Assembly (NCBI GenBank): GCA_021613535.1
Contig: CP075497.1
Span: 7,192,001-7,256,000 of the forward strand
Direction: 5' to 3'
Source of the DNA: Adineta vaga
Taxonomy: Eukaryota; Animalia; Rotifera
DNA length: 64,000 nucleotides
A model generated the notes under the pieces. The model was not told the DNA's origin. It made no database searches and worked only from the letters and a program-made list of their open reading frames with translations. Shown one piece after another: positions 50,768-55,450 of this stretch; within the stretch, counting starts at the first letter, position 1, and each line of letters opens with the position of its first letter. Position numbers and translations under genes: made by a program.

Positions 50768-51415
50768 CGATGATATATTTGACGAAGAAGTGAAAAGGTA
50801 ATGACAAGTTAACACCTACACTTGTTGAAAAACCGAGACAATTATTATGAAAAAGTTGCCGCCAAATCTTTACTTAGACAATACGAACTAATTATTTTGG
50901 ATAAAACTTGCACATGACTCTATTTTCTTTATCCATTCGATATACGAACATGTCAACTATCTATGAGAATACTATCACATATTATACCATCCATATGAAT
51001 AGCCTCAGCTATCTTTCGGCGATGTTCAGTGCTTTTTGTTTTTTGACAACCTGTTCTTGGCAGGTTTCGAAAGAATGTTCGACTGGATCAAACTTTTTAG
51101 TTAGGAAAATGATTACAATAGAATTTTATTCTATTCAAACCTCTTTTATCGTTTTAGATTTCAATAAACAGTCACATGACACTTTTGAATTATCCAACTA
51201 AACTTCTAATCCAGTGACCATCGGAAACAGTCATTTTTTATAATCAAACTTACTCATATAAGTCTAATTCAACGACTAAAATATCATCATTTTAAAACAA
51301 ACTCTCCAGAAAAAAAGACATGTTCATCTTTATCTATTCTTTTCTCTTTGTATGTGTAATTATTGAATAATTTTTATATTTGTCAAGAAACAGAAAAACA
51401 ATATACAGTGTAAGA

Positions 51416-54400
51416 ATGAAGAAGCTGGAGAGTAAAATGTTTGGCGATGTTTGTTGTTGGTTTAAAACGTTTGTTTTTGTCACTGTTTTTATTCTGGTTA
51501 CGGCTATTGCTGTTTTTCCATTTTTTATCTGTAGGATTTTTAAAAAAAGGAAAACTATCCATTAATTAATTCCATTCGTACATTTATTTTATTTAGACAA
51601 TTTGACAAGTACGCTAACGAAAGTATCTAATCAATCATATCATCGACTACCAACTAGTGTTACACCCACGAATTATCGCTTATATGTTGATGCAAGTCAA
51701 TTGGAAGAATTTCTTTTTCATGGAACTGTTGATATTGATGTTCAAGTAAAAAATCTTATTTAAAAAAATTGAAATTTTATGAAAACAATTTTTAGATAAA
51801 TGAATATGTTGATGAAATTATTTTAAATAGTGTCAATTTAAATATTATAAAAATTCAGTTTCGACAGAATAATTTCGATTTTGAACCTTATGGAACAGTT
51901 ATATATAGACATGAATATGAACAAATCATTATCAAATTTAATCAACCATTAAATGTAATTTTTCAAAGATTTTCTTTTCTAAACTTCTGTTTTATTTATC
52001 TAGCTTGGTTACGGTCGTTTATCATTAACATTTAATGGAACAATAAATGATCAACTTCATGGATTTTATCGAACTAAAGATCATAATCATATTGGTGCAT
52101 GTACTCAATTTGAAGTAAGAAACATAAATCTTTATTTCATTTCTTTTTTGATACAGATATTCTATTAGCCTGGCTATGCTCGTCGAGCATTTCCTTGTTT
52201 CGATGAACCATTATTTAAAGCTAATTTTTCCATTACTATTCGTGCCCCTAAACAACTAACAACATTAAGTAATATGGTATAGATGATATATCTCTTTTTT
52301 TTCGCGATAGAAAAGCAATCTGTTTGATTTCTTCTAGCCAGTTAAATCACAACGAGATGGTGGAAATCGGACATATATCTATGAATTTGATTCTACGCCA
52401 GTCATGTCAACATATTTGGTTGCTTATGTTATTGGACATTATGATTATGTTGAAACAAGAGATTCAAATAATGTACTTATTCGTGTTTATACTCCAATTG
52501 GAAAAAAAGAACAAGGATTATTCGCTTTAAAAGTTAGTTTGTTTTCTAATATAAATCGATTTAAACATAAAAAGAATATTTTTAGACTGCGGCAAAGATG
52601 CTTCCATTCTATACCGATTATTTCGGTATTAAATATCCATTAAGTAAATTAGATATGATTGCCATTGCAGATTTTGGTTCTGGTGAATGTTATTTTTTGT
52701 CTCTATCTGTTTTAATGCTTGATTTTTCTTTTAGGAGCAATGGAAAATTGGGGGTAAGTCTCATTTGTTGAAAACAAAGTATCTCTAATCAGATGATGGT
52801 TTATGAATTAAATAGATTAGTTACTTATCGTGAAACGTATCTTCTTGTTGATGTACATACATCAACACAAAAAACGAAACAAGAAGTAGCATTAGTCGTT
52901 GCACATGAATTAGCACATCAATGGTTCGGAAATTTAGTTGTAAGTTAAACTTACTTGAATCTATCATCTTTTTTTTTTATATCATAATGATTTCTCTAGA
53001 CGATGGAATGGTGGAATGATTTATGGCTTAATGAAGATAAGTATTCAAAGGATCGAAATATGTTCTAATTTTTTTTTCTTTTGATTTTGTTTTCTACGTT
53101 TTGCATCATGGATTGAATTTCTTGCCGTTGATCATGTTTATCCAGAATATGACATTTGGACACAATTTGTTTCGGATACATTAGCAACATGTATGATTCC
53201 TGATGCTTTACAAAATAGTCATCCAATTGAAGTACCAATACAAAAGCCAACTGAAATCGATGAAATTTTCGATGATATTACATACTCAAAAGGTCTTTTT
53301 CAAGCTTTCATTCTTTTAAAATCGTTCTGTATTTTAGGTTCAAGTGTAATTCGATTACTTCATGCATATATTGGTAATCAGGCATTTCGAAGTGGTCTTT
53401 CGAATTATTTAGCTGAATATGCATATCGAAATACAAATACAGAAAAGCTTTGGTTTCATTTATCAAAAGCATCGAATCAGTCTCATCTATCTGATGTTCT
53501 TTCAACATGGACAAAACAAATGGGTTTTCCTCTTCTTACAGTATGATTTTCTTTGAAAATAGAGATACAATTTAATTTTTCAATATAGGTAAAACAAGAA
53601 CAGAAAGGCAATGATCGATTATTGACTATCGAACAAACGAGATTTTTAGCAGATGGATCACGAGATGATAATTTACGATGGAAAATACCCATTAGTGTCA
53701 GTACGAAAGCAAAGCCGAATGAAATTGTTCATCAACTATATCTAAACGGAGAGAAAAAACGAACATTTCTACTAAAAGATATACCAGAAAATGATTGGAT
53801 TAAATTAAATCTGTTTAGGTAAATTTCCTTTTTTCATTCAACGAAACAAATATTATTCAATCATCATTCTTTAGTGTTGGAATATATCGTGTTCATTATT
53901 CATCATCAATGCTTCAAGCATTAACACCAGCTATTGAAGATCATACACTTTCACCGCAAGATCGTTTCAATATTCAAACTGATGTCTACGCATTAGCACG
54001 TGCTGGTCACATGGGTTATGTTGATTATTTGAAATTACTTCGTCATGCTTATAAACATGAAGATAATCATACGGTTTGGAAATCAATTCTACGGCAATTA
54101 ACTGAACTTAGCTCAATATTTGAATATGCACAATTTAACAGTACAAAACTACTTTATCATTCATATGTATGTGATCTTTTAACGAATATCTATGACAAAT
54201 TAGGATGGGATCCATTGTCAAATGAAGACACACAAATACCTATGTTACGTAGTTTAATCTTAACACATACAGGTGTTCACGGATATGAAAAAACACGTAT
54301 TGAAGCACACAAACGTTTTGAAAGATTTTCTATTGAAAATCAAGATCATTATCGAATTAATCCAAATATTCGTGCCGCTATTTATTTAACTGTTGCAAAA

Positions 54401-55210
54401 ACAGGAAATCTACAAACATTCAATCGATTAAAAGCGGTAATTATACTAACAATTGTCATTTTCAAAAGCATACATAGAGAAAATCGAACTTTTTTGTAAA
54501 TTTACTCATTGTCTTATGATTATGCAAATATTGTTAACACATAACAGTGCTTCTATTTAAAGATGTCATTGCATATCTTAACAGAAAATTTGTATTTTTT
54601 CTAGTTATATCTGCAAGCTGATACCCAAGAAGAACGTATTCGATTACTCACTGCTCTTTGCCGTTTTGATGATGAAACTTTGCAAGATCAAGCAATTCAT
54701 TTTGTTTGGAATACTGTAAATATCTTTTGGTATATATTCATAAACTAAAGACAATGATTTCTGTTAAGGCTGAAGTTCGAAAACAGGATCATTTAACTGG
54801 TTTTGCATCATTAGCTGCACATAATCGACGTGGATGTGAATTATGTTGGACATATATGCAAAAGAATTGGAAACAAATTGAAATGATCTATGGTGAACAT
54901 GATACACATTTACTTCATTTTATTGAAGTAAGAAAAAACTTTTATATTCTTGTTTTTCATGTCTTCAATTGATCTTTTAAGACGATACCAGCATTATTTG
55001 TTAGTAAAGAACGAGCCGAAGAAGTTCGAGTAAGATAAATTCGTAAAGATTTAGAAATTCTTTTTCGATTTTTCAATTTAGAAATTTGCTATTGATCATC
55101 CGAATCCATTTTTGGAACGTTCGATTAAAAAAGTTCTTGAACAAATCAATATTCGACGTCATGTACTAGAACGACATGAACTTAGCATAAATCAATTTCT
55201 AAGTGTTTAA
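51416..55210 (+). CDS. M1 zinc aminopeptidase, puromycin-sensitive aminopeptidase-like, with N-terminal hydrophobic anchor
   Basis: About 17 exons; [74 protein letters not shown]...[19 protein letters not shown]. Confidence 0.93.
53037..53097 (+). other. AT-AC intron (61 nt)
   Basis: Only removal of ATAAGT...TTCTAC restores the conserved LWLNE-G-FASWIE; no AG is present in the acceptor region. Confidence 0.9.
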
Positions 55211-55450
55211 TATAACGATCAAGAAAATTTTTCAAAAACAAACTCGTGTTTTCTTTTTTCTATGTTTTATCTTTTCAACCAAACAAATAAATTCTCGATT
55301 GAAATCCTCATGCATATTATGTATGTACAAATATATGTATTTATTTATATATCATAGCCGTCGAACAGCAACAAAATATTGAGTTTCTTTTTTTTAAAAA
55401 AGTACTGAGAAGAAAAAAATACAGTGCTATTTGAACATACAGAAGAAAAA

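Follow-up and report, generated by a model that had tools for sequence, protein, structure and literature searches.

An AT-AC intron with U2-type signals in a puromycin-sensitive-like aminopeptidase gene of the bdelloid rotifer Adineta vaga

Which spliceosome removes an intron that begins with AT, ends with AC and otherwise carries U2-type signals? This question is raised by a 61-nucleotide (nt) intron in the gene for an M1, puromycin-sensitive-like aminopeptidase of the rotifer Adineta vaga. The gene lies in C6:7192001-7256000, a stretch of 64,000 nt that is referred to here as the window and is AT-rich (about 30% G+C); the assembly comprises 100.8 Mb in six contigs. Located at 51376..55297 on the + strand of the window, the gene is transcribed and contains 17 introns, many of them short, of which 15 correspond to joints listed from RNA contigs and two were read from the sequence around a mini-exon encoding AMENWG. 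All 16 remaining introns (14 listed joints and the two flanking the AMENWG mini-exon) are GT-AG.

The AT-AC intron and the evidence for its removal

The intron starts with ATAAGTATTC and ends with TTTTCTAC, and interrupts a Gly codon in phase 1, just past the third zinc ligand of the enzyme (WLNE/G/FASW, slashes marking the split codon). The exon on its 5' side closes with ...CTT AAT GAA G at 53036 and the exon on its 3' side opens with GT TTT GCA TCA TGG at 53098, a junction that cannot be slid, the flanking bases being different (positional ambiguity 0). A sequence-only reading of the window had proposed that excising exactly positions 53037-53097 gives the motif WLNEGFASW, and this is borne out by the sequence, by an RNA joint from 53036 to 53098 and by the fit to the Pfam profile: the exons flanking the preceding mini-exon align to positions 44-84 and 98-161 of Peptidase_M1, and the mini-exon (53000-53036) together with the split Gly codon supplies exactly the 13 absent profile positions (85-97). 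The same reading had stated that no usable AG acceptor is available, which holds in effect, with the correction that an AG does exist at 53049-53050, 13 nt from the 5' end, where it is unusable. The elements concerned are as follows.

52940..52999, + strand: upstream neighbouring GT-AG intron of 60 nt (joint 52939 to 53000), which serves as internal control and whose 5' site differs between orthologs
53000..53036, + strand: 37-nt mini-exon ending with the first base of the Gly codon (RNA joints; profile positions 85-97)
53037..53097, + strand: AT-AC intron of 61 nt, phase 1 (joint 53036 to 53098 in runs X1, X3 and X10; DNA run X8 concordant)
53037..53044, + strand: 5' splice site ATAAGTAT, pairing with the U1 5' end at -2, -1 and +2 to +8, with a mismatch at +1 (and at -3)
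53063..53069, + strand: branch-site-like TTCTAAT, whose A at 53068 is the predicted branch nucleotide, 30 nt before the 3' end
53069..53094, + strand: polypyrimidine tract, mostly T (0.88 pyrimidines in the 25 nt preceding the terminal TAC)
53095..53097, + strand: 3' end TAC, with an invariant A at -2 and a last base C that is A in 8/20 orthologous sequences
53098..53292, + strand: downstream exon, from bases 2-3 of the Gly codon through ...YSK to the first base of the next Gly codon (sequence, RNA joints, Pfam)

The exons of the gene match Pfam Peptidase_M1 (PF01433) and ERAP1_C (PF11838), and the exon reading contains both GAMEN and HExxH-X18-E, including WLNEG, the motifs of M1 zinc aminopeptidases of the puromycin-sensitive type. 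Relatives in the databases carry the name puromycin-sensitive aminopeptidase, and the product is accordingly predicted to be an M1 zinc aminopeptidase of that type.

The RNA evidence consists of assembled contigs from three runs belonging to two studies (X1 and X3 of study P1, X10 of study P5), which contain none of the introns of the aminopeptidase gene and are therefore RNA-derived. A transcript joining 53036 to 53098, the test set by the sequence-only reading, was found in all three, each contig skipping 61 nt bounded by AT..AC. An unspliced contig from a DNA-like run of 2013 (X8, study P4) spans 52595-54174 and differs from the window at 11 positions, none of them inside 53037-53097; the AT and AC termini are therefore not assembly errors. 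Use of the same junction extends to a second bdelloid, in which an intronless, mRNA-like metagenome contig with an open frame of more than 811 codons, an ortholog of the type found on contig C3 (see below), reads WLNEGFATW. We conclude that 53037-53097 is a genuine spliceosomal intron with AT...AC ends that is constitutively removed. A terminal sequencing or assembly error, a pseudogene, or a contig mis-join mimicking the junction has a single formal foothold, namely that the RNA evidence is made of assembled contigs and not of raw reads. Its probability is negligible against an identical joint in three RNA-like runs from two studies, a matching independent DNA run, intact and conserved exons, and the same termini in the ohnologous A. 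vaga copy, in a Rotaria magnacalcarata contig from NCBI and in numerous metagenome contigs, so that the claim that sequencing error was unlikely is upheld.

Splice signals and their variation across bdelloids

The 5' end of U1 in the A. vaga genome reads ATACTTACCTG, and the 5' splice site, G/AUAAGUAU, pairs with it at -2, -1 and +2 to +8, the most that a site with A at +1 allows. It is predicted to form duplexes of -5.9 kcal/mol with U1, -2.7 with U11 and -2.4 with U6atac, the values for a consensus U12-type site being -0.2, -9.9 and -6.6 kcal/mol, respectively. The intron falls under the published definition of 'AT-AC II' introns (PMC1557818), with a 5' site equal to the U2-type consensus save for A at +1, and AT...AC ends with an unambiguous RNA junction. 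Neither of the two sequence boxes of minor introns is present: the U12-type box [AG]TATCCTT is matched at ATA only, and there is no TCCTTRAY about 10-20 nt from the 3' end; a strong T-tract, which minor introns lack, is present. The only good branch-like element is TTCTAAT. Its A, the predicted branch nucleotide, precedes the 3' end by 30 nt, a distance compatible with a U2-type branch site (18-40 nt), and the tract after it has 88% pyrimidines.

A DNA search of the whole assembly returned on C3 a copy 75% identical to the aminopeptidase gene, and the pairing of matches between C6/C3, C2/C5 and C1/C4 looks like that of ohnologous chromosomes. The C3 ohnolog carries an AT-AC intron at the same codon and in the same phase, in which ATAAGTATTC, TTCTAAT and the terminal TAC are identical and the interior has diverged; judging from this comparison, the AT-AC state is older than the divergence of the two ohnologs. 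In the closest paralog pair, C2:13563806-13564410 (L003, - strand) and C5:6412664-6413096 (L004), the Trp codon of WLNE is split in phase 1 by a GT-AG intron, 12 nt upstream of where the AT-AC intron sits. In further M1 paralogs, GT-AG introns occupy different positions nearby (L006, L008, L015) or there is no intron (L013, L014), and these near-miss positions cluster around the zinc-ligand motif.

Orthologs were gathered through protein searches made one exon at a time, through look-ups of contigs and through a metagenome scan, giving 20 distinct orthologous introns: the two A. vaga copies, the R. magnacalcarata NCBI contig, and environmental and Logan contigs with bdelloid-like coding sequence. 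These sequences are mutually related, and the counts that follow are descriptive and not independent. The introns measure 46-61 nt and share ATA at +1 to +3 (20/20), AAGT at +3 to +6 (19/20) and A at -2 (20/20), while 12 end in C and 8 in A; TCCTTRAY occurs in 0/20, and some introns show no clear YTRAY motif either. The GT-AG intron immediately upstream at the same 20 loci was used as an internal control. AAGT at +3 to +6 is present in 19/20 AT introns versus 12/20 control introns, a match to U1 at all seven positions from +2 to +8 in 14/20 versus 0/20, and the mean pyrimidine fraction of the tract is 0.77 versus 0.63. One metagenome contig (L092, Ga0116227_10107115) holds a decayed, pseudogene-like copy of the region. 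It has lost both the reading frame and the WLNE motif, and a remnant ...TTTTTTAC precedes a degenerate 'LVTWIQF' exon.

The variation of the last base was followed in DNA loci only. There are eight distinct introns ending in AA, including that of R. magnacalcarata, some of the sequences being identical in three samples each; the exons of these loci are intact over 1.5-2 kb, and each of the two ohnolog lineages includes AA endings. At least two switches between C and A are required by well-supported branches, and the best tree implies seven, although this tree, built on the 192-nt downstream exon, is poorly resolved and the number of independent switches is therefore uncertain. An attempt to call AC versus AA from read-through residues of the open reading frame (LR versus LS) was dropped, because Arg is also encoded by AGA.

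The downstream exon invariably begins with G, so that a C-to-A change creates AAG/. With GT at +5/+6, this opens an in-frame GT...AG alternative that is longer by 3 nt and puts Asp-Asn or Asp-Lys in the place of Gly. This is the alternative adopted in the deposited model of R. magnacalcarata (L040; GCA_905332135.1, CAJOBI010327787.1; protein P0174), which reads WLNEDKFASW and is probably a mis-annotated AT-AA intron beside the zinc ligand. In the AA orthologs the AT-AA junction appears more likely than the GT(+5)...AG alternative, because the Gly is invariant in 35/35 non-bdelloid relatives retrieved, because the GT(+5) donor would be very poor (e.g., GTCTCA), and because one AA lineage has no GT and is otherwise intact. 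In that bdelloid lineage (L048, L049 and L051, identical in three samples) the intron, at about 1146-1198 of the locus, reads ATACTC...AA between intact exons; its next downstream intron has been precisely lost. Given the repeated C/A switching in intact bdelloid genes, an A-A terminal pair seems to be tolerated as well.

Spliceosome type and origin

The genome search for minor small nuclear RNAs (snRNAs) that the sequence-only reading had suggested returned all four above Rfam cut-offs (U12 78 bits, U6atac 83, U11 81.7, U4atac 92.8), and absence of the machinery therefore cannot decide the type of spliceosome. Their recognition boxes are canonical: U11 starts with AAAAAGGGC, U12 contains GAGTAAGGAAAA and U6atac contains AAAGGAGAGA. 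A ZRSR2-like gene (L102; C6, about 3557900-3558060, - strand) retains a canonical U12-type intron, ATATCCTTTT ... TCTCCTTGAC ..., with both U12-type boxes (ATATCCTT and TCCTTGAC), and minor introns in A. vaga thus look canonical.

Further introns of the ATAAG...AC kind, for which the sequence-only reading had also suggested a search, were recognized elsewhere in the genome. An EVI1-like zinc-finger gene on C6 and its C3 ohnolog both carry AT-AC introns of the form G/ATAAGTAT ... TTCTAAT ... T-tract ... YAC, and a dynein heavy chain gene (L101; C6:4937226-4937287) carries one of 62 nt, ATAAGTTTC...GTGTTTAC, that runs from ATAAGT to TTTAC and whose removal restores GGR/VTDDW. The aminopeptidase intron is therefore one of a small family in A. 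vaga, its members alike in G/ATAAGT, in a CTAAT-like site followed by a long T-tract and in a YAC 3' end; the EVI1-like intron is likewise conserved between ohnologs, while the EVI1-like and dynein introns belong to other genes and other positions. A genome-wide pattern for this class (GATAAGTAT..YTAAY..TTTACG) gave five matches versus six for a reversed-pattern control, i.e., no enrichment, and cannot be used to count the class; a short canonical U12-type intron pattern gave 11 genome-wide matches versus 21 in its control and is equally uninformative.

Taken together, these signals make it most likely that the AT-AC intron is excised by the major (U1/U2/U4/U6/U5) spliceosome, i.e., that it is a U2-type 'AT-AC II' intron. 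Several observations pull the other way. The minor snRNAs are present, and the ATACTC...AA site of L048, L049 and L051 fits U1 poorly and U11 and U6atac slightly better; the 20 introns compared are not independent, and the spliceosome class is assigned from sequence. Together with the retention of a few minor introns in bdelloids (PMC10639083; the ZRSR2-like intron), the first two points are also the grounds on which the minor (U11/U12/U4atac/U6atac) or either spliceosome might be held to remove the intron, making it a degenerate or 'hybrid' minor intron with drifted signals. The main argument for such an intron is the switching between AT-AC and AT-AA seen in the orthologs, since variation of the last base (AC or AA) is described for U12-type introns (PMC1557818 Table 2; PMC2831892) and not for U2-type ones. 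We nevertheless regard it as improbable. The boxes of U11, U12 and U6atac are canonical, the 5' site agrees with the U12 consensus at ATA only and none of the 20 introns holds TCCTTRAY. In its distance from the 3' end (about 22-30 nt) and in the strong pyrimidine tract that comes after it, the branch-like site shows U2-type traits, and the element conserved in 19/20, AAGT at +3 to +6, is the one recognized by U1 and U6. The earlier claim of U2-type rather than U12-type internal signals is thus sustained by conservation, by the canonical minor boxes and by the contrast with the ZRSR2-like intron.

On removal by the major spliceosome, the 5' site would be read by U1 and later by U6, the A at +1 being offset by otherwise maximal complementarity, as the pairing of ATAAGTAT with U1 begins at +2 and extends all the way to U1's 5' terminus. 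U2 and U2AF would be recruited by a CTAAT-type branch site lying about 30 nt before the 3' end, together with the unusually strong T-tract. For the second step, the two terminal bases of the intron would form a non-Watson-Crick A-C pair instead of a G-G one.

How such an intron arose is a separate matter. According to one proposal, U12-type AT-AC introns that change at +4 to +6 become U2-type AT-AC introns and are then trapped (PMC2831892), and bdelloids have undergone an extreme but incomplete loss of minor introns (PMC10639083). The aminopeptidase intron may therefore be a former U12-type AT-AC intron, converted at +4 to +6 during this near-complete loss and then 'trapped', an origin compatible with U2-type splicing today. 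We give this a substantial but less than even chance. It would follow the pathway proposed for vertebrate AT-AC II introns (PMC2831892), conversions of this kind would be favoured by the bdelloid loss of minor introns (PMC10639083), and the EVI1-like and dynein heavy chain genes supply further AT-AC introns with U2-type signals in A. vaga. However, no outgroup with a U12-type intron at the Gly codon was present among the outgroup sequences retrieved, the closest paralog pair has its GT-AG intron 12 nt upstream instead, and our literature search found no paper combining NPEPPS and 'minor intron'. The comparison of intron position invited by the sequence-only reading was answered in part: other bdelloids share the position and the AT start, but vertebrate genomic frames start ...Q/EWWTHL and continue uninterrupted through WLNEGFASW, and vertebrates therefore have no intron at this position. 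Non-bdelloid metagenome loci are intronless long reading frames (transcripts or microbial genes) and are uninformative in this respect. The other route, on an equal footing, is that a GT-AG intron underwent two compensating changes; it may be related to the one that the paralogs carry 12 nt upstream.

Gene structure, known AT-AC introns and significance

A few further features of the aminopeptidase gene were recorded. The GT-AG intron at 54437-54604 is 168 nt long, threefold longer than any other intron of the gene. A joint from 54714 to 54769, which appeared as a 'TG..AG' non-canonical intron, was rejected as a T/A polymorphism at 54715 beside an ordinary GT-AG intron (54716-54768); position 54715 is the last exon base before this intron, and is A in the RNA contigs and in the 2013 DNA run. 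Contigs of both kinds, DNA-like (X8) and RNA-like (X10, X1), continue into unlike sequence at two places, 51376 and 51481, just upstream of the first exon region and within it; a structural difference between alleles or strains probably accounts for this. An mRNA-like ortholog (L056) lacks the hydrophobic N-terminal segment encoded by the first exon.

To our knowledge, few U2-type AT-AC introns have been documented outside vertebrates, and our literature search found no paper on non-canonical splice sites in Adineta vaga. Dependence on U2 has been demonstrated experimentally for the AT-AC introns of human SCN4A and SCN5A, and 15 human, six mouse and three fly cases have been listed, corresponding to about 0.003-0.008% of introns in these species, with none found in worm or Arabidopsis (PMC1557818). 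The rotifer intron resembles the AT-AC II introns of SCN4A, SCN5A and TAF2 (PMC1557818; PMC2831892) in its AT...AC ends, in a 5' site of U2 consensus save for +1 (A at +4, G at +5, T at +6), in its polypyrimidine tract and lack of a U12 branch box, in its long conservation between orthologs and paralogs, and in the rarity of its class in the genome. It differs from them in being very short (46-61 nt among orthologs), and from SCN4A and SCN5A in that dependence on the major spliceosome is experimental there and deduced from sequence here. With U12-type AT-AC introns it shares the AT...AC ends, the tolerance of AC and AA among orthologs and the presence of minor snRNAs in the genome, whereas it lacks the ATATCCTT 5' box and TCCTTRAY near the 3' end and has a strong pyrimidine tract. 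The alternation of C and A at the last base, which is not described for the known U2-type cases, is the one point at which the bdelloid introns go beyond what is described for the class.

The aminopeptidase intron is thus a genuine new example of a rare, already known class, and adds a well-supported invertebrate case with dense comparison, in which two ohnologs are joined by about 18 other distinct sequences from bdelloids. Some positions are fixed (ATAAGT and A at -2) and one is free (the last base, C or A), a pattern that bears on how the first base and the last one interact in the second catalytic step, and also on whether such introns are trapped minor relics in a lineage nearly without minor introns. 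Gene predictors, moreover, probably mis-model this site, as in the NCBI entry of R. magnacalcarata, where E-DK-F stands for E-G-F beside the zinc ligand. More speculatively, and with doubts that we consider to outweigh the case for it, bdelloids might carry a whole set of U2-signalled AT-AN introns that are converted relics of minor introns, their major spliceosome accepting A-A as well as A-C terminal pairs. If this were true, they would constitute a natural system for observing how AT-AC introns escape or stay 'trapped', as the C-to-A change creates the GT(+5)...AG(+1) alternative.

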